Sequence record: MT799840.1
Strand: one strand, 5' to 3'
Length of the DNA stretch: 64,000 nucleotides
The position numbers and the translations under genes were made by a program. Positions 23,050-62,006 of the stretch are shown here, piece after piece. The number at the start of each line of letters is the position of its first letter. Position 1 is the stretch's first letter. The notes under the pieces were generated by a model, which ran no database searches, had not been told where the DNA came from, and saw only the letters and a program-made list of their open reading frames with translations.

Positions 23050-23577
23050 ATGGGATACCGTATAGATTTATCAAAAACCCCGAAACAGATTCTGGTTGAG
23101 AGAATCAATTACGTTTTTAAGTTATCGTATAGTGAAAATAACTACGAGTTTAACCCACGTGGGGTGTGGCCACTGACACGAGCAGAGCGACGCGCTAAAG
23201 GTGTGGAGTCTAAAGTTGCGGCGCGCTTTGTAAATGGGGTACACGGCACTCAAGAGTTTTACCTGACTCGTGCGGACTTAAACAAGTTACTTAAAGACGT
23301 AACGGTTGAAGTCCCGAAGGGTGCGGCAGAATGGAGCCATGAATTAGTTCCGTATATTGTCGATGAGCTGGGTCTCCAGCTTGACACCTATGATATCATG
23401 GTTGAACCGATTACCCCGGAAATGGAATCGTATGAGGCGCGCTTAATCCCGCACCATCTATCTTTCAAAGGCACGATTGCGATTACTTTTGTTGACCCAA
23501 CTCCCCGTAAGCTGGCGCAGCTGGTAACTAAACGGGCACTCGACGGGTTTCGCCCAGGAGAATTTTTAAATGGCTAA
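23050..23577 (+). CDS. Virion protein, stand-alone paralog-family N-terminal module
   Basis: N-terminus and C-terminal LAQLVTKRALDGF motif resemble the 55.9-63.5 kb paralogs. Confidence 0.65.
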   Translation: MGYRIDLSKTPKQILVERINYVFKLSYSENNYEFNPRGVWPLTRAERRAKGVESKVAARFVNGVHGTQEFYLTRADLNKLLKDVTVEVPKGAAEWSHELVPYIVDELGLQLDTYDIMVEPITPEMESYEARLIPHHLSFKGTIAITFVDPTPRKLAQLVTKRALDGFRPGEFLNG

Positions 23578-43479: not shown

Positions 43480-43688
43480 TGAATCTACGTTGGCCGATCG
43501 TGGCTGCTGTGTTGTTTTGTATTTATATCGCCGTCAGCACCAGTACCCGCACTGCAGAACGTCGCGAGACCGCAACCAGTACGTTCAGAATGTGCATTGA
43601 CCGCGTAGACCCGAACAGTACCACTTATCCTGACGCGGTGAATGCGTGCCGTAAAGCAGTTGCTGAGATATTGAAAGAGGAAAATTAA
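43479..43688 (+). CDS. Small membrane-anchored protein with Cys pair
   Basis: WPIVAAVLFCIYIAV transmembrane segment; MCIDR...NAC. Confidence 0.65.
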   Translation: MNLRWPIVAAVLFCIYIAVSTSTRTAERRETATSTFRMCIDRVDPNSTTYPDAVNACRKAVAEILKEEN

Positions 43689-43915
43689 TGGAAAACCTTA
43701 CGCCGATTGAGATAGTGGCGCTATTCGACCGTTACGTATACGGACAAACGCAGGCAAAGAAAATGCTGGCGATTGCGCTACGTAATCGATATCGTGCCAA
43801 CAAACTCAACGTAGTGGACCGTATGTCGGTCCACAAACAGAACCTTTTAATAGAAGGGCCAAGAGGCACGGGTAAAACGGCGTTGATGCGTGAAGAAAAA
43901 CAGAAACAAAAGTGA
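43688..43915 (+). pseudogene. hslU: Truncated HslU (ClpY) ATPase N-terminal fragment, 75 aa
   Basis: LTPIEIVALFDRYVYGQTQAKKMLAIALRNRYR...NLLIEGPRGTGKT matches the HslU N-terminus through Walker A, then stops; next gene starts 8 nt later. Confidence 0.8.
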
Positions 43916-43923
43916 GGTAAAGG

Positions 43924-44931
43924 ATGGCGAAGCTCGTTTCGTTTTCAGCAGGGTTGGATTCCACCTGGATAATGTATCAGCTGCTATGCAAAGCACCGGC
44001 CAATGAAGCACGACATGTCCGTCCTGCGTATTTCTCCATGTGGAATGGAGGTAACGCGAACTTCATGGAAATTCTTTGTAGCGTGGCCATTGTTGAACGG
44101 TTGATGGATAGACACCATGCACAAACCGAACATGTTACATGGGCGGTGCTCGGGGAAGAGAACTTCCCGCCTGTCGTTAGCGCTAGATATGCTAACGGCT
44201 GGTCGCCTCTGGTTCAGCAGGGCAATGTTGTTAACGGTCTCGCTAAACTGATGTGTGGTATTACGCGCAAACAGCACCACGCCTATGCAGTTGTTGGTTG
44301 GAATAAGCTAGATGCGTTGGAGAATAGTCTAGAGCTGGGAGATTGGACATTAGACGAGTACGCTCGCTTAAAGAACCTTTATAGCGAACTGATGTATTTC
44401 CAAGATCATGCCGGCCGCGTTCCACCGCTTCTAACACCTGCGTGGGATAAAGAGAAACTTGAAATGTGGCAGGAGTTGCCGGAAGACATTCGTAGATTGG
44501 TGCAGGTCAGTAACTACAACAACTACGAATTCGCGATAGACCGTGAGAATAACGTGCTCATCGTTTATGCCCATCCGTCGGCAAAGTCGCAGAATTATCG
44601 TAGTCTTGGTATTACACCGTCTGTGGGATGGGAGATTAAAATTAACGATGCTTACAGACGGGTATGGTGTTCTGCTCTCGGTAGTGCTATTTCTGCTATG
44701 GGTTTGGACGTACCGACTTTTGCTAACTTTAAGGACCCGAAAAGAAATCACACAACCTTTACGGTAACTGAAGATACTGAAAGACTATTTATCACGTCAT
44801 TTACAGCAGAAGAGTGGTGCGAATATGCACCGCATTTTAAAGCGCTTCAGGAGAAAGAAAAAGAGAGAGCGAAAAATGCCAAAGCAAGTAAAGCTGTGGA
44901 CGCTCCAACTGGCGAAGTGGCGGATAGCTGA
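43924..44931 (+). CDS. PP-loop (adenine nucleotide alpha-hydrolase) protein
   Basis: LVSFSAGLDSTW is an SGGxDS-type PP-loop; no QueC Zn-cysteine cluster. Confidence 0.65.
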   Translation: MAKLVSFSAGLDSTWIMYQLLCKAPANEARHVRPAYFSMWNGGNANFMEILCSVAIVERLMDRHHAQTEHVTWAVLGEENFPPVVSARYANGWSPLVQQGNVVNGLAKLMCGITRKQHHAYAVVGWNKLDALENSLELGDWTLDEYARLKNLYSELMYFQDHAGRVPPLLTPAWDKEKLEMWQELPEDIRRLVQVSNYNNYEFAIDRENNVLIVYAHPSAKSQNYRSLGITPSVGWEIKINDAYRRVWCSALGSAISAMGLDVPTFANFKDPKRNHTTFTVTEDTERLFITSFTAEEWCEYAPHFKALQEKEKERAKNAKASKAVDAPTGEVADS

Positions 44932-45734: not shown

Positions 45735-46274
45735 ATGGCAGACCGCTATCAGCCCGACCTAACACTGAGTTCAAAAGCGCTAGTCTTAGCGCTTATCAAT
45801 CATGACAATAATCTGTCACTTACTGATAAAGAGATTGTGATTCGGGATATTGATGCGAACGCTTCACCAGACATCATCCCGAAGAACACACAGGCAAGCG
45901 TGGCCAAAGCACGTAAGCCAAATGGGAAAACCGTGACAGTCTATTATGACCGGTTAAGTGCGTCTACCGTGCTAGACAGTTTTCAGCCGCTATTGGTGTC
46001 CTTAGACGGAACCGAAACGGACATTCAGCAAATTGCCAGTGTGATTAACGGTTACTGCGGTACAAACTTGTCAGCAGCAGACTTACAGTCTGCGCCAATC
46101 GTGGTCAGCGACGATTTTACCCTGGTGAATATCACTGGCGATTCCCCAGCATGGCTTGGGACATTTGTCGCAACCCTGTTTACCAAAAATGAGTACGTTC
46201 TTTCAACTGACACTGACACGGTGCTGTGTCTGGATGAGAACACTGTGCTCGTACTGACTGACGAGGAAGAGTAA
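45735..46274 (+). CDS. Virion adaptor, stand-alone paralog-family N-terminal module
   Basis: SKALVLALINHDN, VYYDRL, SPAWLGT match the family. Confidence 0.65.
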   Translation: MADRYQPDLTLSSKALVLALINHDNNLSLTDKEIVIRDIDANASPDIIPKNTQASVAKARKPNGKTVTVYYDRLSASTVLDSFQPLLVSLDGTETDIQQIASVINGYCGTNLSAADLQSAPIVVSDDFTLVNITGDSPAWLGTFVATLFTKNEYVLSTDTDTVLCLDENTVLVLTDEEE

Positions 46275-46759
46275 TGGCCAGCCCAGTTAAAAAGCAAACA
46301 TTTGAGAGCTTACCATTTTATACCGATATCACCAACGTGAAAGATGGGATGTTGTTGTTTATCAAAGATGGGAAAGCGTATCAGTACCCGCTCGAGATGT
46401 TGGGTGTCCAGAAGGTTGCTCAGGGTGTCGTTATTCGTGATGCGGCGTATGAGTTGGAAGCGGCAGCAGCCACTGATTGGTACCTAGGACTGTCGCAACC
46501 GGAAACCGATCTCACTATTAAAAGTGATGGTGTATTGGGGGCATTTCGGTACACGCTCAACCTGACTATTCTTCAGGGAACGGGAGCCAACAAAATTAAC
46601 TGGCCTTCCAACGTGAAGTTCCCCCATGATGCATACCCGGTGCTGTCGTACCAGAAAGGGAAATCGGACATGATTACCCTGACTACAATCGACGGCGGTT
46701 ACACCTGGAAAGGTGGCGTTAGTGGAACAGGATATACAGAATGGGTAGAAACTCCTTAA
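46274..46759 (+). CDS. Tail-fibre-associated small protein
   Basis: WPSNVKFP...PVLS...GKSDMITLTTIDGGYTW is a common fibre-associated beta domain. Confidence 0.55.
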   Translation: MASPVKKQTFESLPFYTDITNVKDGMLLFIKDGKAYQYPLEMLGVQKVAQGVVIRDAAYELEAAAATDWYLGLSQPETDLTIKSDGVLGAFRYTLNLTILQGTGANKINWPSNVKFPHDAYPVLSYQKGKSDMITLTTIDGGYTWKGGVSGTGYTEWVETP

Positions 46760-49758
46760 TCGCAGTACGGACAGGGATTAACAATGCCCTGTCGATGGCC
46801 TACGGTCATCAGGACTTCGTTCGTCGAAATACCGGCTTAACTAACGACGCCCACAATGACCATTATCTGATTAACCCAGAAGGGGTGCTATCTAATAACC
46901 GGCATTTCATTGCTGACTCCATGGCAGTGTATCAACCTAATGGTGACGCCACCACAGAAGGTCAATCGTTGCTGATTATTGGGTATTGCCACATGTACAT
47001 CGCTACCAAAAACCAGATGTGGTTAGATGCGGCGATTCATGCATGGGAAGCGTACGCTACCTACTATTACGCAGGTCAGGCCATTCCCGATTCACCACAA
47101 CGTTGGATTTGTAACTGGCTAGTTAACGGTAAAGAGCCAGTGCTGGCAGACTATCCGGTGCATCCGACCGAGCCAACCCACGGTGGTTATAAGTGTGTAC
47201 CGGTAACGTTTACGAACGGGCGTTGCCAGATACCCCATGGCGCACCATTCTTTGGTGAATATCTGAACAAATTCTTTTCTGCGCATCGCGGCCATCCTAC
47301 TTGGGGTGCGGTTAATGCTGATGTACAGAAAATTAAGGAATCGGAAGACGGGTTAATTGACTGGTCTAAAGTCCCTGATTACTTAATCACCAATCCAGAG
47401 AAACCTTACGATGTAAAAGCGTGGGTGGACTGGAACACGATGCTAAACGACCCAACCGGATATACACCAATATGGGGCGGTTCTACCTCGAAAGGTCCGC
47501 GGTACGAACCTGACTGGTTTGTTGTGTGGACGGGTGAGAAGGTTCAGGATGGCGAGGTCATTGAATCTGGGTTGCCTGATGCCCAGAAAGGAACCGTACA
47601 ATTAAAGGACACCAGTATTAACGGTGTGTATTTGATTAACTACGCTTCCCAGGTACCTGTAGAGCACGGCGGATATTTGTTTGACCGCAATGAGCCGTGG
47701 CACAACCGTCCGGTTCATACCCCGTTAAAAGGGTCTGTTAACCAGATGGGTAACGCGGCAGATGCGGAAGTGTGGTTTATTGATGCCTGTTATCTGCTCT
47801 GGCGTATCACAGGTGAACCGCGCTATAAAGCCGCACTAGACTCTGTGTTCTATACAGCGCATGAATACACGTATATCGATGCGAAGGACAAGTTTTTCCG
47901 ACGTTCTAAGCTAGCCGAAACACCATTTACAGATGGTATCTCGTACGACTATAAATACCCCAGCACTGTTGAGGTCGCTTACAGTCGTGATGAAAATGGT
48001 GATATTGTGTTCCGTTCTGAGAAAGCTGTGCAGAACTTTATGGAACAGCAAGCCGTGCGTTTCAGGATAAACAGTCAATCGAAGTTACGTGTGACGTATG
48101 GCGGTGTTTGCGACAACGGTGATGCGCTTGCGTGTAAAGTGATGGTGGATATTAACCCCGTCAAAGCGGATACTGAGGAAGTAAACTGGTACGGCTGTAC
48201 GCTTCCGGGATCAACATCGATGGAAGTAGAACAGCATGACATCGATTTAGGGCATCTGGCCAGAATGACCAATCCGGCCAACGGCGAAGATTACATCATT
48301 GCCGATGCGCGAGCATGTTCGGACTACGGTGGGTGTACGTGGCAGGAGAAGTTTGAGAACAACATTTACGATGGTCGTTCAGGCACAATCGTAGAAGCGT
48401 TATTCCCGAACGACGATGCGGGTTTCATTATCGGTTTCTGGTTAACTGATGCCGGAGTTGCACCCCCACAGTCAATTGTCTATCGTGCTGATGCTGATTT
48501 CAACTTCCGTTTCGAAGATACCGACAAGTGGCGTTGGTGGTGGATGTTGCCCGCGACTAACGGGGAATGGAGACAGGTTATTATTCGCCCTGAAGACGCA
48601 ACACTCTCGGGCTATCAACCTGACCACGATACCGACGTCGAACCAAAACCGGCTGCGCCAAACTATACAACTATCGATCAGGTAACCATACTGCCCGATT
48701 CGGCTGTGGAGAATGCGCACTTTAGCTGGTATTGCGTAAACGATGTTCCGCCACTGTTTAATGCAGATGATGGCTGGACATTAACGTTTCGCATTGCAAT
48801 TCGGGGAGGTTCCGCATTTACGGGTAAAGTGGGCGATTGTACGATAAAAGATTACCGTCTTGACTCGCTCGCGTATTGTCCAGGAACGATACCGTTCTCG
48901 AACATTTATTCGGAAGGAACGTATCAGCTAGGTGCATGGCACGGGATGCCGTATCCTGGCTATCAGTATCCGTTTATGTACACCATACACACCGATGATC
49001 GCTACAAAGACTGGCTCTTAAATCAGATTCGGTTTATGCGCGATTCACAAACCAACTACCAAGCGCAGATAGGTGAGTTAGGTCCAGGTTGTGCGGCGTA
49101 TATTTGGAACCGCTGGGATAACTACTCTTACGGCCCGGCAGATACGTGGACAACGTTCCATTGGGGCGATGGACATCCGTGGGCAGGTTATCAGCCACGC
49201 GCGTATAACGCCGCTGCGCGTTGTTGGTACGAATTAGTTGTGCGTGGTAAAGAGGTTCCACCAGAGCTAGTAGAGTACGTTGAAAATTGGGCTAAGTGGC
49301 TCGTAGGGTTCTTAGACCGCTTTGACAACCACACGCCGAATGAATTCCCTACGGCACCAAATAAACCGGTATGGGTAGAGAATGATTTCACAGCACATAT
49401 GTGTGCGCTCTGGATAGCAGGCAGCGCTTATGCAGCAATGGCTGGCTGTACAGTGGAAGGGTTGAGCCGTATTATGGATATGGGGATGAAGGAGATGGGT
49501 GACAACTTCACCGTCACCGACATTCCAGGAAAAGCCATTAACGGTGCCTGGTCTCCGTGGGCAAATCCTACCACGGATAACGGTCAGGCTTTTGGGTTTT
49601 ATACTGGAGAAGCGATGCGTGCAATCGGGTTGTATCTCCTCTATAAAGAACACGGCCCAGGACATGATATTTATCGTGACTTGGCAATACCCGACCACAC
49701 AACAGCTTCACTCGATATAACGTTTACTATCCCAGACGATCCGCTCGAAACTAATTAA
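46741..49758 (+). CDS. Large virion fibre/appendage protein with GH8-like glycoside hydrolase motifs
   Basis: TTEGQS (E73) and NAADAEVW...LWRITGEPRY (D341) resemble GH8 SEGQ and SAxDGD motifs; central Trp-rich CBM-like region. Confidence 0.65.
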   Translation: MGRNSLIAVRTGINNALSMAYGHQDFVRRNTGLTNDAHNDHYLINPEGVLSNNRHFIADSMAVYQPNGDATTEGQSLLIIGYCHMYIATKNQMWLDAAIHAWEAYATYYYAGQAIPDSPQRWICNWLVNGKEPVLADYPVHPTEPTHGGYKCVPVTFTNGRCQIPHGAPFFGEYLNKFFSAHRGHPTWGAVNADVQKIKESEDGLIDWSKVPDYLITNPEKPYDVKAWVDWNTMLNDPTGYTPIWGGSTSKGPRYEPDWFVVWTGEKVQDGEVIESGLPDAQKGTVQLKDTSINGVYLINYASQVPVEHGGYLFDRNEPWHNRPVHTPLKGSVNQMGNAADAEVWFIDACYLLWRITGEPRYKAALDSVFYTAHEYTYIDAKDKFFRRSKLAETPFTDGISYDYKYPSTVEVAYSRDENGDIVFRSEKAVQNFMEQQAVRFRINSQSKLRVTYGGVCDNGDALACKVMVDINPVKADTEEVNWYGCTLPGSTSMEVEQHDIDLGHLARMTNPANGEDYIIADARACSDYGGCTWQEKFENNIYDGRSGTIVEALFPNDDAGFIIGFWLTDAGVAPPQSIVYRADADFNFRFEDTDKWRWWWMLPATNGEWRQVIIRPEDATLSGYQPDHDTDVEPKPAAPNYTTIDQVTILPDSAVENAHFSWYCVNDVPPLFNADDGWTLTFRIAIRGGSAFTGKVGDCTIKDYRLDSLAYCPGTIPFSNIYSEGTYQLGAWHGMPYPGYQYPFMYTIHTDDRYKDWLLNQIRFMRDSQTNYQAQIGELGPGCAAYIWNRWDNYSYGPADTWTTFHWGDGHPWAGYQPRAYNAAARCWYELVVRGKEVPPELVEYVENWAKWLVGFLDRFDNHTPNEFPTAPNKPVWVENDFTAHMCALWIAGSAYAAMAGCTVEGLSRIMDMGMKEMGDNFTVTDIPGKAINGAWSPWANPTTDNGQAFGFYTGEAMRAIGLYLLYKEHGPGHDIYRDLAIPDHTTASLDITFTIPDDPLETN

Positions 49759-53031: not shown

Positions 53032-53835
53032 ATGTTAAAACCACGCAAACAGAAAAGATTACAGTTTGTCAAAATAGTACATCCACAGTCCCGTCGTGTT
53101 ACAGGTGGACGTCTCTACGTGGGTAAACACCGTAGTCGTCTTATCACCTGGTCGGCAATGGCCAACGTAGCCACCCAACTCCAGGCAATGGTTGAAGACC
53201 GTTGCCAGTTAAAAGGGGATTTCTTTCAAGAGAAGAAACCCTATCGTGATATCTTCCGTACACTAAAAGCGTGCTGGGTACTCAGCTGGGTGCCTGGCCG
53301 CGAACAACTTTATTTTCTGCGTAAGTTCCCACGCCCTATGCCGAAGGAAAACATTAGCGTTTTCTTAGACAAACTAAAACGCTTTAATGACATCGGCATA
53401 AACGCTAATAAAGAGCAAGTTTCTGCTACAGTAGCAGCCCGAAAACACTTACGCGATTATGTGGCCGATCGAGATGTTGAGTTCGCTTATATGACGCCGA
53501 CTGTACCGCTGCTAAACGGTGATGCATTGAAAGCGAAGATGGAAGAGATCGCGTTGAAGTTTCCTAACATCAGACACATCGCACCAGACGCGGTACTACA
53601 GCTGAACACTGAAGGCTGCACGCGATTACCGACAGTCTCTGACACGGTGTTAGTATCAACACCTGATGTCCCTGAGGGGAAATCTTTCCTTGAAATGATA
53701 AAGAAACGTACAGAGGGTGGATATCAGCCGGTCTTTCTAGATTCCCTGTCAGAGCATCCTGATGCGAAGCAAGAGTTTAACATGAACACCAACAGCCCTT
53801 ACGACTCACTCTACAAGGATGGTAATGATGCTTAA
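53032..53835 (+). CDS. Hypothetical protein starting MLKPRKQKR
   Basis: SD TAAGGAG before ATG 53032. Confidence 0.7.
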   Translation: MLKPRKQKRLQFVKIVHPQSRRVTGGRLYVGKHRSRLITWSAMANVATQLQAMVEDRCQLKGDFFQEKKPYRDIFRTLKACWVLSWVPGREQLYFLRKFPRPMPKENISVFLDKLKRFNDIGINANKEQVSATVAARKHLRDYVADRDVEFAYMTPTVPLLNGDALKAKMEEIALKFPNIRHIAPDAVLQLNTEGCTRLPTVSDTVLVSTPDVPEGKSFLEMIKKRTEGGYQPVFLDSLSEHPDAKQEFNMNTNSPYDSLYKDGNDA

Positions 53836-54052
53836 ACCGAAGAAAAGAAAGAAGCCCATTAACATCATGCATGGTATATGTGGTGGTGTTGTTGGATATC
53901 GCGGTGATGTTCGTTTTCCAATTGGCCAAGATGCGATTGAGGGCATTCTGCTCATCTACTCACCGTCTGTAAATTACCCATCGGCTCCGAAGGTCGTTAA
54001 TCGTGTGTTAGAATTAGTGAGGACTGGCTATGTTAAAACCAAAGAAACGTAA
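53828..54052 (+). CDS. Small hypothetical protein starting MLKPKKRKK
   Basis: SD AAGGA; ATG 53825 or 53828. Confidence 0.55.
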   Translation: MLKPKKRKKPINIMHGICGGVVGYRGDVRFPIGQDAIEGILLIYSPSVNYPSAPKVVNRVLELVRTGYVKTKET

Positions 54053-54461
54053 AGATGGCGCAGTCATTCTCACTCCGAGAATTTCTGTGGCTGTTGGTAA
54101 GAAACTGGTGGTTCAAGATGGCAAGTGGTTAAGCGACGGTTTCCACAGCTATTCTGCCCATGCAATGGCTGACAATATGCGCGTGATGCACAACAGCCGT
54201 GGCCGCAACCGTCGCGACCAATACCCTAAGCCTATCCGTGTATTGGCGACGTGGTATATGCGCTACATGCAGAAGAATTTCGGTCATGACAAGTCCGTCG
54301 GTAAGATGGTGCACGAGTACAATTTCAAACGTGCGCAAAAAACACTCGCCGGTGGTGAAGTGGTACCACCGCCACGGCGTTTAGGTTACATGTCAGTCGA
54401 CCGTGCTGTTTTTGAACTACAGAATGCGGAAGATAAGGAGAATAACAATGTCGGGGATTGA
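54030..54461 (+). CDS. Basic hypothetical protein starting MLKPKKRKD
   Basis: SD GAGGA. Confidence 0.65.
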   Translation: MLKPKKRKDGAVILTPRISVAVGKKLVVQDGKWLSDGFHSYSAHAMADNMRVMHNSRGRNRRDQYPKPIRVLATWYMRYMQKNFGHDKSVGKMVHEYNFKRAQKTLAGGEVVPPPRRLGYMSVDRAVFELQNAEDKENNNVGD

Positions 54462-54834
54462 AGAACTCGAGAACGGGATGAAGTGCTACACGTTTGAAGA
54501 TGGGACGGTGTTGACTTCGACCACTAACGAACTTGCTGACCTGGTCCCCGACCACAACTATTTCGTCATGGGTAATGAGAAGGTTTATCCCGGTGGCGAA
54601 ATAGGTATTCTCTTTAAATGGTTCGTATGTGATGAAATCACCGACGATGAACGTTACGAACACGTCAGTAAGGCGATGTTCGAGACGGGTGAGATAGAAC
54701 ACACCGGTCGTGTACGTGTCCTTTCGAACGATGGACACGCTGTTGAGCTTGAATGGATCGCGTCCGGGCGTCCGAGACAGAAACACTATTATAACGGCAG
54801 CGGAATCACCACCGTTGCAGAAAGCCTTAACTAA
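54448..54834 (+). CDS. Acidic hypothetical protein
   Basis: SD TAAGGAG before ATG 54448. Confidence 0.65.
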   Translation: MSGIEELENGMKCYTFEDGTVLTSTTNELADLVPDHNYFVMGNEKVYPGGEIGILFKWFVCDEITDDERYEHVSKAMFETGEIEHTGRVRVLSNDGHAVELEWIASGRPRQKHYYNGSGITTVAESLN

Positions 54835-54838
54835 GGTC

Positions 54839-54876
54839 TACCCTACTCCTTCGGGAGTAGGGTTTCTTCTTTTTTT
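54839..54876 (+). terminator. Intrinsic terminator
   Basis: ACCCTACTCC-TTCG-GGAGTAGGGT + T-tract. Confidence 0.9.
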
Positions 54877-54897
54877 GCCTAGTCCGATTACAATTAT

Positions 54898-54974
54898 TTT
54901 CAGATATATATTACTTAGGTGAGAGTTAACCATTAACTCTTATCTAATCGACCATTATCTTAAGGAGTTTTAAC
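54898..54974 (+). promoter_or_regulatory. Early promoter cassette, copy 3
   Basis: TTTCAGATATATATTACTTAGGTGA + hairpin + AATCGACCATT + SD. Confidence 0.8.
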
Positions 54975-55421
54975 ATGTACATTCTGAATAACGAACTTAC
55001 TAAGTACGCTAGCAAAAACCCGATTATGATTTCTTTCCTAATCGTGATGGCGGCCAACAAACAAGACCCTAGCGAATTCACTACTGAGGACTTCGAAGAG
55101 ATTATCGCCAACGCCAAAGAAGCCACGTTCCAGACCACAGAACCTACTCGCGACGAGTTCCCCCTAGGTGAAACCGGCGATGTATTGTTTAACGACATGG
55201 TTGCTTCGTACTACATCAATAGACGTGGTATGGAAATCGAATACGACGAACTTCCTACTAGCAGCTTTGCTGAAATGATTCGTGATTATCGTCGTCAAGT
55301 TGTCTCTGACGATATCGTAAAAAAATACATGGCACAAATCAGCCCATTCAGTCTTGAATTCGAAAACCGCGCGATTGCCTTAGCAACACATCGCCTGCGT
55401 TTAGAAAAAGAAGTACACTAA
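54975..55421 (+). CDS. Hypothetical early protein
   Basis: First gene behind early cassette, SD TAAGGAG. Confidence 0.7.
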   Translation: MYILNNELTKYASKNPIMISFLIVMAANKQDPSEFTTEDFEEIIANAKEATFQTTEPTRDEFPLGETGDVLFNDMVASYYINRRGMEIEYDELPTSSFAEMIRDYRRQVVSDDIVKKYMAQISPFSLEFENRAIALATHRLRLEKEVH

Positions 55422-55482: not shown

Positions 55483-55701
55483 ATGCGCAACCTGTTCTCC
55501 AAATCTGAAATCAAACCTGTTGTTGAAACCGCAGCCAAACGTAAGCCCGACATGATTGACCTGCTGCTGAAAATGTCTGCAGTAGAAGCCAAAGCTTTCA
55601 TGAATACAATGAAAGACGACGAGAAAACGATTGACAACGTTGAAGTAACCTACGGTGTTAAAGACCGCCCAAAGAATAACGGCCTTGTGTGGGTCTGTTA
55701 A
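55483..55701 (+). CDS. Small hypothetical protein
   Basis: SD AAGGA, 72 aa. Confidence 0.6.
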   Translation: MRNLFSKSEIKPVVETAAKRKPDMIDLLLKMSAVEAKAFMNTMKDDEKTIDNVEVTYGVKDRPKNNGLVWVC

Positions 55702-55725
55702 TCGACGATTGAGGATATAGTCGTG

Positions 55726-55780
55726 AAGAAAAGGGAGCTTCGGCTCCCCTTCTTTTTTTTGTTTCCTTTTCTTTTTTTGT
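55726..55780 (+). terminator. Intrinsic terminator
   Basis: GGGAGC-TTCG-GCTCCC + long T-tract. Confidence 0.85.
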
Positions 55781-55800
55781 TTGCTCTTGTTCAGATTCTG

Positions 55801-55823
55801 GTACGCGCCACGCTTTTAATATG
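55801..55823 (+). promoter_or_regulatory. Bipartite promoter variant GTAC-N15-TATG
   Basis: Upstream of the virion paralog array. Confidence 0.5.
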
Positions 55824-55881
55824 CTGGCAGGAGGTCTAAAAATCTTACGACCTCAATAATCCCTTAACTCGAGTTAACGCG

Positions 55882-56679
55882 ATGTCTTTTACTTCAAAAC
55901 AGAATCTGCTAAAACTCATCAACGAAGAGAATAAGATAAGCCCACCGCTTACCTTTGACGATGTTGATATCGGACTGCCGGAGGTTGTGTCAGTAGACGG
56001 TCGTGATTCGGAGGTGGTACTAACCTCGAAAATGCGCGGTGATGAAGGTACGCAAGTGATTGTGGACTATCATCGTCGTCCATTAGAGGACTACCTTAAA
56101 GGCGATGTTGTCTTTGGCGACGAGGACGTGCAAACCACGCACGACTTACTCGCGGCGATTAACGAGCGTTTTAATCTGTCTATCTTACCTGAGGATATCG
56201 AAGATAACCCCATTGATGGACAGACTCACACAGTCGTTGCTGTTGAAACTTCCCACGAGTGGTGAAGTCAAGCGGTCATCGAGCTGAAACCTGCTACACC
56301 TCTGGCAGAAGTAATAACCAATACAGAGTTGAGCGGTCTTCTGTACCCGGATCACCAGGACATCCAGTTGGGCCAGGCGTATATCTATTCGCGTGACATC
56401 GATTGTAGCCACATCTCTCGTTTCCTGAGCCTCTTAGCGGTCGGTATCGAAGTAGATGACACGGCGTTAGCAATCGAACTCAACAAATGTGTTCCTGAGA
56501 TTTGGGTGGCTGAAGATGCCCCATCCCCGTATAACTTGCGTGGTGCTACTGTCGTATTCGACGGCGTACCTGCAGACTTACCGGGAGCAAATACGGCGTT
56601 CGCGAAAGTCGTGTCAGTGCAACTGACCGATAAATGTACGAACTTCCAGGGCAGCCTCAACTTACACTTTAACAACTAG
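55882..56679 (+). CDS. Virion paralog-family protein interrupted by in-frame TGA at 56263-56265
   Basis: Track ORFs 55882..56265 and 56329..56679 share a frame; read through, they give a 265-codon protein colinear with its paralogs. Confidence 0.8.
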
Positions 56680-56689
56680 GAGGGTATAG

Positions 56690-57532
56690 GTGTCTATTTA
56701 CGATAAGCCCTCGAAAGAGATGTTGTTAGATGCTATTAACCGACAGAACGGATTAACGGCCAATCCACTCACATGGGAGCAGGTTGCAACTGGCTTCCCT
56801 GAGTCTGTCCAAACGCCTGGCGCTGACCGGAATACACGTGTACTCTTATACGGGTTGAACGGCAAGGGCTACAAAGGCAACGTTACGCTCGAATACGACC
56901 GTATCGAAATGGAAATTCTGTTCAGGAACGTAATACCGGTAGTCGTTGCCGACCCGGTAAATAAACTCTCTGAGTTGTTGCCGTTTCTGAATGCGAAATA
57001 CGGCTTGTCTTTAGTTGCCGATGATATCGTTGACCAGTCAGTAAAAGATTTGGGAGAAAGCTGGTTAATCGATGTGACTATTAAGCCCGGTTGCTTGGCC
57101 TGGCAAGGTGGTTTCCGTTTACGCTTTGCGAAGTTCTTCCCGAACTTGGCGGATGTGGTGACGGATGTTGACCTCAGCGCAATAATCGCACCGTTCGTGG
57201 TTGCCGATAAACCGCAGGCTGAATATGTGGCATACGGCTACGATTGGACTGAACTGCAAAAACAGTTCACTACCGATTGGGCTTACAACCGTGCAATCAC
57301 TGCAGCGGATGTTGAGTTGTTGAATGAAGTGGTGCCATTAAAGTTTGCATATGTGACGGGGGCGAATGCGCAACCTGAGCAAATTGCGCTCCAAGGTGCA
57401 CGATTTATGGGGATAACTTCAGTCACACCGAACGATAGTTACAACCCCGATTATCAGCGTGTGGCGATTATCAAGCTAGCTGCGGACAGCAACTACGCCG
57501 GTAATCTCATCCTTCATTATCTCCCGATATAA
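56690..57532 (+). CDS. Virion paralog-family protein
   Basis: PSKEMLLDAINRQN...YDR...W-x-G...GNLILHY. Confidence 0.8.
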   Translation: MSIYDKPSKEMLLDAINRQNGLTANPLTWEQVATGFPESVQTPGADRNTRVLLYGLNGKGYKGNVTLEYDRIEMEILFRNVIPVVVADPVNKLSELLPFLNAKYGLSLVADDIVDQSVKDLGESWLIDVTIKPGCLAWQGGFRLRFAKFFPNLADVVTDVDLSAIIAPFVVADKPQAEYVAYGYDWTELQKQFTTDWAYNRAITAADVELLNEVVPLKFAYVTGANAQPEQIALQGARFMGITSVTPNDSYNPDYQRVAIIKLAADSNYAGNLILHYLPI

Positions 57533-57542
57533 GGATTTTGAC

Positions 57543-58388
57543 ATGCCACTTTTAGCCACAGCTGAAAAGATTATTATCGCGGAAGTTAACGTCGAAAACA
57601 ATCTCGATTTAAAAGTCGAAGATGTTGTTTTTGGTGTCCCTGCGATTCCGACGTCTGACGAAGACCTGGCAAAAGCTAACGGTCACAACGCGATGGTGCG
57701 CATTCAGGCATTGGCCACGGCTAATGCTATCGGTGCAACTACCGTGTACTACGATCGTGTTGACTTCGCAGACATGTTTACCGATCCGGACGGGATTCAA
57801 CCTTTACGTGTTCCTGCACGTCTCGATGCTGTTTACCAGATGCATGACGTGGTCGGGTTAATTAACCAGTATTACGGTCTCAGCCTTAAACCTGCAGATG
57901 TGGTGAATACCGAAATCGACAGGAAGACATGGCGTGTGGATCTGATTGCCACGCCCTCTTCTTTAGGTTGGATAGGGCAACAACAGGTACAGCTGTTACC
58001 AGGCGATGCGTTGCTTCCTGCAAACTTCGAACCGTTAACAGTGATGCCTTACGAGTATCCGTATTTCAACATCAAGGTCGGTCAAGGTGCAGTTTATTCG
58101 TATCCCTGGCGCTTTGATAATTTCGCGGAGGAATTTCAACGACTAGGTGCTGCGATAACCACAGAACGTCTGGCACAGATTCTCAAAACGGTCACCGGTG
58201 ATAACTGGACAACATACCGTAACCCTATCGACTTTAACCTTCGTGAAGCCGTCGTCGTCTATAACGGGCGTAACAAAGCGGAATTACCAACCAACCCAGC
58301 AGTCGACAACGTGCTGATTGTGGAGCTGTCGTTGTACTGTCTGAATTTTGGCGGGCGTTTGTACTTGCATTACAACGACCCTGATTAA
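57543..58388 (+). CDS. Virion paralog-family protein
   Basis: VYYDRV, SLGWIG, GRLYLHYN. Confidence 0.8.
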   Translation: MPLLATAEKIIIAEVNVENNLDLKVEDVVFGVPAIPTSDEDLAKANGHNAMVRIQALATANAIGATTVYYDRVDFADMFTDPDGIQPLRVPARLDAVYQMHDVVGLINQYYGLSLKPADVVNTEIDRKTWRVDLIATPSSLGWIGQQQVQLLPGDALLPANFEPLTVMPYEYPYFNIKVGQGAVYSYPWRFDNFAEEFQRLGAAITTERLAQILKTVTGDNWTTYRNPIDFNLREAVVVYNGRNKAELPTNPAVDNVLIVELSLYCLNFGGRLYLHYNDPD

Positions 58389-58409
58389 TCCTGAGTAAAG
58401 GAAGTAAGA

Positions 58410-59321
58410 ATGAAACCTTTAAACAAAACGTCCGATAAGCTGGTTCTGGATTTTATTAATGAGAAAAACCCAGACGCAGAACTGGAACTTTCTAAAATAA
58501 CGCTCGGCACACCGACCCCTATTGTCGACGAAGGTGCTGATCGCAATACCAGCATGACCCTGACTGCGAAAAAGAACTCCGGGTACATCGGTACTCAGGA
58601 CGTGACTTATAATCGCCTGGAAGGCAGTGCGCTGTTCCGTAATGTAACCGCATACCTCGACGTTAAACTGCCGAAAACCACCACAGACCTGCTGACGACC
58701 CTGAACACCCAATACGGATTGAAGCTGACCGAAGACGATATCGTTCCGGCGGCTATTCCGGAAAATACCAACCCGCCGCTGACTAACCCGAACGATCCGG
58801 ACCCAGCACCGGTTGACCACGTCATTACCTTCAAAGAAGACTGCTACGCTTATCTGGGCAGCATCCCGGTTAAAATCGGTGCTAAGCCTCAGGTTGGTGA
58901 ACGTCTGAGTCTGGTGGTAACACAAACCAAGCTCGACGGCCTGGTTTACCCAGATGGTCCAAGCGAAGCGAAGGGTCAGGGTTACATCTACTCTTACGGC
59001 GTAGACTGCACAGCAATCGCACCATTCCTGAAAGTACAGGCGAAAGGTGTTATCGCTGGCGACTCTGCATTCCCGGTTGAGCTGAATAAAGTTGTGCCGG
59101 AACTGTGGGTTGCATCTGATGAGCCTGCGGATTATAACCTGAAAGGCGCTAACGTGTTGTACGTTGGTTCTACTACTGACGATGGCACTGCTTCAGGCGA
59201 CGAACCTAAGAAACCGGTTGAAGGCGCAAACACTGCTTACAACCAGGTTCTGCTGCTGCAGCTGGATGACACTCTGTGCACCAACTTCCAGGGTATCATG
59301 TACCTGCACTTTAATGCCTAA
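58410..59321 (+). CDS. Virion paralog-family protein (strong codon bias, likely abundant)
   Basis: TSDKLVLDFINEKN, YNRL, GIMYLHFN. Confidence 0.8.
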   Translation: MKPLNKTSDKLVLDFINEKNPDAELELSKITLGTPTPIVDEGADRNTSMTLTAKKNSGYIGTQDVTYNRLEGSALFRNVTAYLDVKLPKTTTDLLTTLNTQYGLKLTEDDIVPAAIPENTNPPLTNPNDPDPAPVDHVITFKEDCYAYLGSIPVKIGAKPQVGERLSLVVTQTKLDGLVYPDGPSEAKGQGYIYSYGVDCTAIAPFLKVQAKGVIAGDSAFPVELNKVVPELWVASDEPADYNLKGANVLYVGSTTDDGTASGDEPKKPVEGANTAYNQVLLLQLDDTLCTNFQGIMYLHFNA

Positions 59322-59329
59322 TTAGGCCT

Positions 59330-59374
59330 CGCTGGGAGGAGGAAATCCTCCTCCCAGCTACTCCTTTCTTTTTT
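59330..59374 (+). terminator. Internal terminator in paralog array
   Basis: GCTGGGAGGAGG-AAAT-CCTCCTCCCAGC + T-rich tail; follows the most codon-biased paralog. Confidence 0.8.
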
Positions 59375-59390
59375 GGCCGAGGAGGCTATT

Positions 59391-60230
59391 ATGGCTTTAT
59401 ATAGTCTGTCTCAGCGACAATATCTGTACGATGCGATTAATGCCGAAAACCCGGATGCTGTGCTACCGATGGGTTTAGACAATGCTATCATCGGTACGCC
59501 GAAAGCAATCACACCGACAGCAAGCGGTGCCAACACCGAGATTATCATTCGTGGTCGTCAAGGTCGTGGCTATATCGGTCCTCAGACGTTCCGTTATAAG
59601 CGCTTGTCGCTGAACGACTTATTTAAGAACATGACACCTCAGGTAACTGCACCGAATGCCTACGGTTGGTTGAACGTGGAGTCGAAACGTACTGCGTTTG
59701 CGCAGAACCTGAACGGTCGTTATGGATTAAACCTGGTTGCAGATGATATCCCAGAACAATACGTTTATCTGAACGTAAACAACACGATGCGTATTAACGC
59801 TAGCTGTATCCAATACACTGGCAGTATCACCTTTATGTCTGTCCGGGGTAAGAATAACCTCGAAGACCTCGTGGTAAACGACATCTTGTTGGCTTTGAAC
59901 CACCCTGCAGCAGCAAGCACTGGTAAGAAATACATGGGCTTCTTGACGTACGGGGAAGACTTTACTGATGAAGTGCAGGTTATGGCCTCGTTTAAGAACG
60001 GGCGAATGGATGTAGGAAGTAACTTTGATTTGGGTTACACGTCCAATCTGATGGCCACATTGGTCGCACGTGGGGTACCGTCGTTTGATCCGACGAACTG
60101 CACAATTACCCGCTACAAAACGAGTGAGTTGGCGACCGCCAATAAAGCGTACGATAACGTATTGCTGATTACCGGCATTCAGAACGACCCGAAAGTAATC
60201 GGCGAGTGTATGTTGCACTACAACAACTAG
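59391..60230 (+). CDS. Virion paralog-family protein
   Basis: ATG 59391 after GGAGG; YLYDAINAEN, YKRL, GECMLHYN. Confidence 0.8.
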   Translation: MALYSLSQRQYLYDAINAENPDAVLPMGLDNAIIGTPKAITPTASGANTEIIIRGRQGRGYIGPQTFRYKRLSLNDLFKNMTPQVTAPNAYGWLNVESKRTAFAQNLNGRYGLNLVADDIPEQYVYLNVNNTMRINASCIQYTGSITFMSVRGKNNLEDLVVNDILLALNHPAAASTGKKYMGFLTYGEDFTDEVQVMASFKNGRMDVGSNFDLGYTSNLMATLVARGVPSFDPTNCTITRYKTSELATANKAYDNVLLITGIQNDPKVIGECMLHYNN

Positions 60231-60240
60231 GAATTAGCGA

Positions 60241-61128
60241 ATGGCTATTTATCAACCTTCTAAAGACGTCCTGTTGGCAGCAGTGAACGCACAGAACTCG
60301 CTTGCTGTTAAGATGACTGACATCATCTGGTCCACGCCAAAGGACATCCGTGGTACGGAAAAGGAAACGTTGACTAACCGTAACACGCAAATTAAAATTA
60401 CGGCAGATGGGGTAAAGGGCTCTACCTGGTCGGGTAAGAAAAATGTCTTCTACAACCGCATGAAAGTCGAAGACTTGTTAGTGCTGATTGGTGACACGTT
60501 GGCGATCGGCCCATCCAACGAAACCTTGTATGCGGCCATTCCTGGACTGAACCAACGTTACGGTTTTGTTCTGGAAGAAGCTGACCTGCAGGACGCAGAT
60601 ATCGAATGGAACGGTGATAAGACCGAAGGTACTGTGCGTGTTGTTGCACATCCAGAATCTATCGGTTGGGTTGGACAGGCGACATTTAAAGTCGTGAAAG
60701 GCGATGAGTCGTTAGTCTCTGCGGTCACTACTAACGTCCTGACCGGTCTGAAATACCCGAACGGTCAGATGGGTTCCGAAACCGTTACTGCGGTCATTGC
60801 AGAGGTTTATTCCTACCCGTACAACTTCACTAAGTACCGAGATGCTCTGCTGGCATACAAGCCGGGTATTCTGTCTGGACAGCCGTTAACGGATATGGTT
60901 AACCTGCTGAAAGATATCACGGGTACTGCATGGGTAGCGACCACCTCCGCTTCCTACGGTTTGGCGGGTGCGGAGGTTATCAGCGTTGGTCTGAATGACC
61001 CTGTTGCAATGCCGACAAACGCGAAGTACAAGTATGTGCTGGCGTTGAAACTGCCTGTTACCTGTACCACCATCGTCGGAACGTTGTATCTCCAGTTCAA
61101 CGATCTGGACGATCCAAGCGAGGTATAA
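60241..61128 (+). CDS. Virion paralog-family protein
   Basis: PSKDVLLAAVNAQN, FYNRM, GTLYLQFN. Confidence 0.8.
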   Translation: MAIYQPSKDVLLAAVNAQNSLAVKMTDIIWSTPKDIRGTEKETLTNRNTQIKITADGVKGSTWSGKKNVFYNRMKVEDLLVLIGDTLAIGPSNETLYAAIPGLNQRYGFVLEEADLQDADIEWNGDKTEGTVRVVAHPESIGWVGQATFKVVKGDESLVSAVTTNVLTGLKYPNGQMGSETVTAVIAEVYSYPYNFTKYRDALLAYKPGILSGQPLTDMVNLLKDITGTAWVATTSASYGLAGAEVISVGLNDPVAMPTNAKYKYVLALKLPVTCTTIVGTLYLQFNDLDDPSEV

Positions 61129-61959
61129 TTGATGATCAACTATGCTAAGCCGTCAAACGAGTTGGTCTTTGACCTCATTAACCGGGATAACCCGAACCTA
61201 CCTATTAAAGCGTCGCCGGCAAACTGCTACGTGGAGAAAGTGACGCAGGTTCCCGTTAATGCAGCTTCCAACAACCGCAATACGTCGGCACGCTTGCGCG
61301 GTATTCAGGGTTCCGGATTTCGAGACGCAATCACCGTTTACTACGACCGTGTGAACTTAGCGCGGTTATTGCCGTGGGGTCCTTCTGTCCAGGCGCAGTT
61401 CGTCACGTTTGACGCGCCCAACCTCCACTCAGCCTTTTCGGTGCTCTTGGATACTTACGGAGTAAACTTCTCTGCAATCGATATCTATAACCTCCCACTG
61501 GCGGGTCCCAATACCCCAAATTACAGCAATACACAGAACATCGTAGCGCTATCGACATCTCCGGCTTATATCGGTTCTGCGACGTTGCGTTATAACCGTG
61601 GTTTACCGGTACTAGACACTTCGGTGAAATCGGATGTCTTGAATGCGATTCAAGAGCCTATTTCACCGTCTCTCGGTAAGAAGTGTATTGATTTGTTGAC
61701 GTACGGTATTGACTTTACCGCGTATAAAAACCTACTGACAGTAGATGCTTCTGGCCTACCGCAGTGGGCTGGTTTGCGTAAGGTGTTGGATGACCTGGGT
61801 ATTCCGAACTACGCGGGGCCACTGAACAGTAACACCGTTCAGGATGTGCCGACATCCACCGCTCAGTTCGCTAACAAATCGTACGACCGCGTGGTTATCC
61901 AAACGGGTATCGATGAGGAAGGCGTGAAAGGCGTGGCGTACTACCACTATAACAGCTAA
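61129..61959 (+). CDS. Virion paralog-family protein
   Basis: PSNELVFDLINRDN, YYDRV, GVAYYHYN. Confidence 0.8.
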   Translation: MMINYAKPSNELVFDLINRDNPNLPIKASPANCYVEKVTQVPVNAASNNRNTSARLRGIQGSGFRDAITVYYDRVNLARLLPWGPSVQAQFVTFDAPNLHSAFSVLLDTYGVNFSAIDIYNLPLAGPNTPNYSNTQNIVALSTSPAYIGSATLRYNRGLPVLDTSVKSDVLNAIQEPISPSLGKKCIDLLTYGIDFTAYKNLLTVDASGLPQWAGLRKVLDDLGIPNYAGPLNSNTVQDVPTSTAQFANKSYDRVVIQTGIDEEGVKGVAYYHYNS

Positions 61960-61990: not shown

Positions 61991-62006
61991 GCGATGCGGA
62001 GTCCCT

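Follow-up and report, generated by a model that had tools for sequence, protein, structure and literature searches.

The first gene of a tandem array of virion protein genes in the Salmonella giant phage JN03 probably carries a recent nonsense allele. A C-to-T change at position 56263 would have interrupted the JN03 ortholog of SPN3US gp138, which is likely to be a dispensable member of a large paralog family. The window analyzed here is 64,000 nucleotides long and corresponds at 100% identity to positions 62001 to 126000 of the JN03 record, MT799840.1; coordinates are window positions on the plus strand unless another record is named. The frame of the gp138 ortholog opens with an ATG at 55882 and meets a TGA at 56263 to 56265, which is codon 128, in the context TGG TGA AGT. 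Past this stop, a further 137 codons are open up to a TAG at 56677 to 56679, for a total of 265 codons. The stop divides the gene into an N-terminal piece of 127 codons (55882 to 56262) and a downstream in-frame piece of 137 codons plus the TAG (56266 to 56679). A preliminary description of this DNA had recognized the in-frame TGA, the frame open to 56679, and the 265 codons, all of which we confirmed, and had favored programmed readthrough that would yield short and long forms of the protein. Because the change from CGA to TGA is confined to one deposit, we read it instead as an ordinary nonsense allele or a base-call error.

The interrupted gene and its paralog family

A megablast search with positions 55700 to 56800 gave a full-length match at 100% identity to JN03 itself (MT799840.1, 117700 to 118800), matches of 97 to 98.5% to about 35 other Seoulvirus giant phages (SPN3US, SEGD1, EC001, the SPFM and SPLA series, and others), and matches of 78 to 86% to Erwinia phages. 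The gene at 55882 to 56679 is the ortholog of SPN3US gp138 (SPN3US_0138, YP_009153432.1), which opens the tandem array of the head "Paralog family B." In SPN3US, it is an uninterrupted 798-bp coding sequence (NC_027402, 115393 to 116190) that is collinear with the JN03 gene and 97.7% identical to it at the nucleotide level. The two share genome position, length (798 bp), Pfam and PHROG families, and the downstream paralog array; they differ in that SPN3US has CGA (Arg128) where JN03 has TGA, and in that the SPN3US protein has been verified at full length in the head. The JN03 annotation gives 55882 to 56265 as a coding sequence for a 127-amino-acid "putative virion structural protein" (QNI20838.1, 100% identical) and has no coding sequence between 56266 and 56719.

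Both pieces of the JN03 gene belong to the same protein family. The N-terminal piece matched Pfam DUF7941 (PF25613) over model positions 5 to 143 (E value of 7.6e-28, 98.2 bits), and the downstream piece matched positions 151 to 276 (E value of 4.6e-33, 115.3 bits), in agreement with the earlier remark that the downstream half keeps the family motifs. Both scores exceed the gathering score of 27 bits, and the intact SPN3US ortholog scored 229.3 bits against the same model. In PHROGs, both pieces matched phrog_1037, "virion structural protein," and the N-terminal piece also matched phrog_2935. The interrupted gene is followed at 56720 to 61959 by six tandem DUF7941 paralogs, orthologs of SPN3US gp139 to gp144, all of them full length and without internal stops, and it heads the same tandem array in SPN3US. 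Two of these six (56720 and 60241) were scanned against Pfam and PHROGs, and all six were included in the paralog alignment. The open reading frames at 23050 and 45735, described earlier as stand-alone N-modules, are indeed such: they are the orthologs of gp83 and gp122, and they match the first 154 to 170 positions of DUF7941.

Several other differences between records were seen in the vicinity of these family members. The start of the paralog that follows the interrupted gene differs by record, being a GTG at 56690 in the mechanical open reading frame and an ATG at 56720 in the SPN3US and JN03 annotations; a longer, 843-bp form is annotated in EC001, SEGD1, and SPFM4. On the other side, a 432-bp SPN3US gene just upstream of gp138 (114807 to 115238) is absent from JN03, in which positions 55701 to 55882 hold a hairpin and a long T-rich run; EC001 and Lh1B annotate a 135-bp open reading frame at this site. 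The GC hairpin with its run of T residues (55733 to 55757) resembles a terminator and lies between the upstream gene (55483 to 55701) and the gp138 ortholog. The gp122/gp123 region at 45735 to 46780, encoding the DUF7941 N-module protein and a small "tail fiber protein," has divergent alleles, and only its first 107 nucleotides match SPN3US, at 76%.

In SPN3US, Paralog family B has 20 members (gps 83, 138 to 154, 161, and 237), with gp122 as a candidate; gp138, itself of low abundance, is the first of the head protein run gp138 to gp154, and members of the family are mostly of low abundance (PMC5105663; PMC5694885). The family was placed in the head by means of a tailless mutant (PMC5105663), and its size varies from 2 to 20 across related phages (PMC5694885). 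In SPN3US virions, gp138 was detected as a 29.2-kDa head protein with 13 to 18 unique peptides and 78 to 86% coverage, in both wild-type and mutant particles (PMC5694885, supplementary tables). A phage with the sense codon therefore makes and packages one full-length protein.

Codon 128 in relatives and the integrity of the JN03 sequence

Each of the 15 GenBank relatives examined encodes Arg at the orthologous codon, with AGA in EC001 and CGA in the other 14, namely, SPN3US, SEGD1, SaP7, Lh1B, Proteus phage 7, SPLA5c, SPLA3, SPFM4, 1252, MET_P1_082_240, SPAsTU, STsAS, and the Erwinia phages pEa_SNUABM_29 and phiEaH2. The gene is intact in each of the 15, at 798 to 858 bp, including the Erwinia phages at 78 to 84% nucleotide identity. 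A C was likewise found at 56263 in contigs from four of four independent public SRA runs (one isolate and three wastewater metagenomes), one of which differs from the window at 3 of 1,013 bases, 56263 among them, and CGA was present in both of two metagenome-assembled genomes of 242 kb. A query of IMG/VR with an N at the variable base of the site returned SPN3US itself and nothing else. The TGA is thus absent from every other sequence examined. Arg in 15 phages, four runs, and two metagenome genomes is the very result that the preliminary description had set as refuting its programmed readthrough; that reading is thereby refuted, and the evidence supports the alternative named with it, a recent nonsense mutation or a sequencing error.

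The lesion is isolated. Relative to the GenBank set, the gene has three unusual bases, at 56111, 56263, and 56373; those at 56111 and 56373 are common to the run contigs, which leaves the T at 56263 as the single position of the gene without a match in another phage or read set. The stop lies one base from a sense codon (CGA to TGA), and other lesions in the gene are absent. Compared with the GenBank phages and the run contigs, the downstream half contains no amino acid change found only in JN03, which argues that the event was recent and that there has been no time for decay.

The same data have to be weighed against an error in the deposited consensus, in which case the phage would carry CGA and make a normal full-length protein. 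The T at 56263 rests on that consensus, it stands in one record against about 21 independent sequences, and it is a single transition. JN03's own reads were sought among indexed runs, and only relatives were returned, with a best share of words of 0.88; a search for a publication describing the sequencing of JN03 found it cited only as a reference for EC001 and Lh1B. The rest of the record, however, looks clean. Of 91 SPN3US genes, 79 are matched in the window, 71 of them at full length and intact. Alignment gaps in the SPN3US genes mapped to the window are multiples of three only, and the gp138 ortholog has the only internal stop among the matched genes. The gene at 53032 to 53472 has lost its terminal stop and reads on, and the rest of the 79 have partial matches. 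Over the 50 kb of JN03 that follow the window, 39 of 48 genes were clean and full length, 7 were flagged, and 2 had no match; these nine comprise allelic replacements, a small open reading frame, an endolysin whose annotated JN03 start lies downstream of the stop, and the gp151 remnant described below. No frameshifting indels were found in the collinear SPN3US genes of the window and the next 50 kb (about 120), apart from one 89%-identical gene too gapped to score. Gene integrity therefore indicates that the assembly is not error prone, which favors a real mutation in the sequenced stock, and a miscalled consensus base is, at normal coverage, less common than a genuine mutation in a laboratory-propagated stock. 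Taking these points together, we consider a consensus error unlikely, although it is the strongest of the rival explanations. Cross-mapping or gene conversion from a paralog is also an unlikely source of the T, as the paralog proteins are only 18 to 39% identical and have Q, I, L, T, V, or K in this column, never a stop.

Structural differences from SPN3US occur elsewhere in the window. The interval 53032 to 54975 holds about 1.5 kb in JN03 against about 175 bp in SPN3US; the ortholog of a 441-bp SPN3US gene lacks its stop there and runs to 53835 (267 amino acids), and the inserted open reading frames at 54030 to 54461 and 54403 to 54834 gave no Pfam match. At 43688 to 43924, SPN3US positions 103184 to 103669 and most of 103666 to 103998 have no nucleotide match, such that about 800 bp are apparently missing or replaced. 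The SPN3US gene at 103184 to 103669 is annotated as a head maturation protease and is perhaps the truncated protease paralog of Ali et al. (PMC5694885).

A second member of Paralog family B appears to have decayed in JN03. The gp151 remnant (JN03 130866 to 131352, outside the window) consists of 381 nucleotides from the 5' end of the gp151 ortholog. Its frame is stopped at codon 78, and beyond it the sequence joins a different triplet of paralogs across a rearrangement junction that JN03 alone spans in the phage collection. The remnant could be a product of birth-and-death turnover of paralogs or of misassembly between paralogs. Genuine structural decay of another paralog from this family would weigh against a consensus error at 56263; it also fits birth-and-death turnover of the DUF7941 family and supports the hint that gp138 can be dispensed with. 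Among the genes listed as essential in the section consulted on the SPN3US amber-mutant screen, none lies within 138 to 154, and redundancy within the family, of which six intact members lie directly downstream, could buffer the loss of one gene.

Position of the stop in the protein

The residues around the stop, SHEW[stop]SQAVIEL, align without gaps to SIGWVGQATFKV of the 60241 paralog, as the preliminary description had noted. In the alignment with the six downstream paralogs, the stop falls in a conserved W/Y-x-G motif, at the middle residue, which varies. A structure model was made from the natural intact SPN3US ortholog rather than from the joined JN03 pieces, using an alignment of 65 family members collected by an exhaustive HMMER search. 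The AlphaFold model has two domains, with a mean pLDDT of 92.7. The N-domain includes strands at residues 115 to 120 and 130 to 137 and a short helix at 141 to 144, and the sole low-confidence stretch, at about 145 to 162, is the linker. Database proteins delimit the modules in a similar way. N-modules cover query residues of about 4 to 160, whether they stand alone (159 to 193 amino acids) or are joined to C-terminal parts of another kind, and proteins consisting of the C-module only align from about 165, for example, a 113-amino-acid protein covering residues 165 to 264 and a 102-amino-acid protein covering 190 to 264.

The strand at 130 to 137 and the extent of the natural N-modules together place the stop at codon 128 such that it cuts off the final N-domain strand plus everything after it. 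In the model, the stop is about 10 to 30 residues short of the module boundary, and the last beta-strand of the N-domain is predicted to be removed. The earlier placement of the stop at the domain boundary was thus approximate: the stop is near the boundary but falls early. The N-terminal piece holds most of the DUF7941 N-module without its last strand, and the downstream piece holds that strand, the linker, and the whole C-module. To judge from the model, the 127-amino-acid product may have lost its fold and would not be equivalent to the natural stand-alone N-modules.

When the model of the intact ortholog was compared with the PDB by Foldseek, one significant match was returned, chain 0 of 9xqd, and the rest were noise. 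This chain, from the outer peripheral region of the phiKZ baseplate, has 150 residues, the size of the N-module, and it matched with an E value of 3.7e-6 and a TM score of 0.62 by target length over 147 aligned columns, at 17% sequence identity. It belongs to a tail baseplate, whereas family B of SPN3US is assigned to the head, so that the two differ in location.

Under the nonsense allele reading, a single substitution would have made an opal codon, TGA, out of the conserved CGA for Arg128, and translation would mostly stop after residue 127. The resulting fragment, an N-domain short of its last beta-strand and with neither linker nor C-domain, would probably be non-functional. The truncation would presumably be tolerated because the gene is one of about 20 paralogs of a tandem family and is not known to be essential. 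Ordinary near-cognate reading of UGA by tRNA-Trp may still yield a little full-length protein in which Trp replaces Arg128.

Translation past the stop and the phage tRNA-Trp

UGA is read at low frequency by tRNA-Trp, and two features of JN03 bear on how leaky codon 128 may be. One is the base that follows the stop. The preliminary description had called UGA followed by A a leaky context, which agrees with the relatively weak binding of UGAA by RF2 (PMC5373646). The context is inherited from CGA-A, however, the A being that with which the conserved Ser codon after the stop begins. The other feature is a phage-encoded tRNA. Seoulvirus phages encode a tRNA-Trp (PMC8812316), which in JN03 lies at genome positions 2142 to 2217, outside the window, and has the anticodon CCA. 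At the top of its anticodon stem, C27 faces A43, which leaves four standard pairs; this was seen in a ViennaRNA fold and by direct inspection, and the Rfam tRNA model marks the pair as non-standard. The tRNA of SPN3US is identical, and a total of 10 records match at 99% or above. Other alleles at 27:43 were C27-G43, giving a 5-bp stem, in SPLA5c and pEa_SNUABM_29, U27-A43 in Erwinia phage Parshik, and G27·A43 in Caitlin. A search of an E. coli collection for the host tRNA-Trp with the phage tRNA as query gave no match at an E value of 1e-5, and only tRNA-Gln loci at an E value of 10.

The unpaired 27:43 position is of interest since the C27A change in E. coli tRNA-Trp(CCA), which unpairs 27:43, increased UGA readthrough in vivo by a factor of about 2.5 under overexpression of the tRNA (2026; PMC13092985). 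The JN03 and SPN3US tRNAs share the CCA anticodon and a non-standard 27:43 with the tRNA-Trp(CCA) decoders of UGA that have a 4-bp stem, those of Blastocrithidia and ciliates and the E. coli C27A variant. They differ from the latter in that the mismatch stems from A43 rather than from A27, and SPN3US has the same tRNA without having the TGA. By this analogy, the phage tRNA-Trp might act as a weak opal suppressor in infected cells, with the UGA-A at codon 128 appreciably leaky and full-length protein with Trp128 still made; we regard this as quite unlikely in that specific form. Given the UGA-A context and the unusual tRNA-Trp, the allele may nonetheless be leaky rather than null. The tRNA-Trp is not specific to JN03, and leakiness would therefore leave the case for a programmed site no stronger.

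Separate expression of the two halves was also considered, with the N-terminal fragment ending at the TGA and the C-module made by reinitiation. There is no in-frame ATG between the stop and 56679, and the only candidate starts are TTG at 56329, TTG at 56368, and GTG at 56506. None of these has a strong Shine-Dalgarno sequence, as had been stated for the downstream half, and TTG 56329 has no usable one. The least implausible is the TTG at 56368 to 56370, codon 163, a speculative restart site that coincides with the start of the C-module and has AGGA 7 nucleotides upstream. Stand-alone C-modules do occur in databases, as in the 113- and 102-amino-acid proteins mentioned above, and phrog_11456 is a C-module-only family. 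The TTG and its AGGA are nevertheless ordinary coding sequence, conserved in the relatives and no novelty of JN03; start codon and Shine-Dalgarno sequence are both weak, the restart would lie 100 nucleotides past the stop, and the split arrangement is not conserved for this ortholog. We consider such a split very improbable.

With respect to recoding, the stop codons of the 72 mapped window genes were TAA in 47, TGA in 15, and TAG in 10, and the base after the TGA stops was T in 8 of the 15 and A in 1. Genome-wide reassignment of UGA to Trp was rejected, as TGA terminates 15 of the 72 genes and none of the 72 contains an in-frame stop. No stimulatory RNA structure was detected in the 106 nucleotides around and after the stop (56255 to 56360), for which the minimum free energy compared with shuffled sequences gave a z score of +0.16. 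Like the JN03 gene, the coat/A1 gene of Qbeta, another enterobacterial phage, encodes a virion protein and contains an in-frame UGA past which the frame stays open, but the Qbeta stop is fixed and the extension is needed, whereas the JN03 stop has no counterpart in any relative examined and falls within a folded domain. Programmed UGA readthrough of the Qbeta A1 type, with a 127-amino-acid N-module and a minor 265-amino-acid form both in use, could draw on the weak RF2 context, the intact downstream frame with its family motifs, the stand-alone N-modules of the same genome, and the unpaired 27:43 of the phage tRNA-Trp, but it is scarcely credible given that the stop is conserved in no relative, that an open downstream frame is expected after any recent mutation, that the N-domain is cut before a strand which natural stand-alone N-modules keep, and that TGA is an ordinary terminator here with no stimulatory structure beside it.

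A recent nonsense allele of the gp138 ortholog is the reading we prefer, and its first consequence is a correction of the annotation: QNI20838.1 would be the product of a truncated gp138-ortholog allele, representing neither a new short gene nor a recoding site. The allele itself is of little import, and the side observation on the tRNA-Trp could matter more. If the suppressor proposal is true, one Seoulvirus lineage would tune UGA termination in the infected cell, and if the unpaired 27:43 raises the reading of UGA, the phage would be carrying an instance of the "4-bp anticodon stem" mechanism that has recently been shown to operate in E. coli. For the family, the JN03 allele is a small natural hint that gp138, and by extension members of the large DUF7941 family of head paralogs, can be lost without killing the phage.
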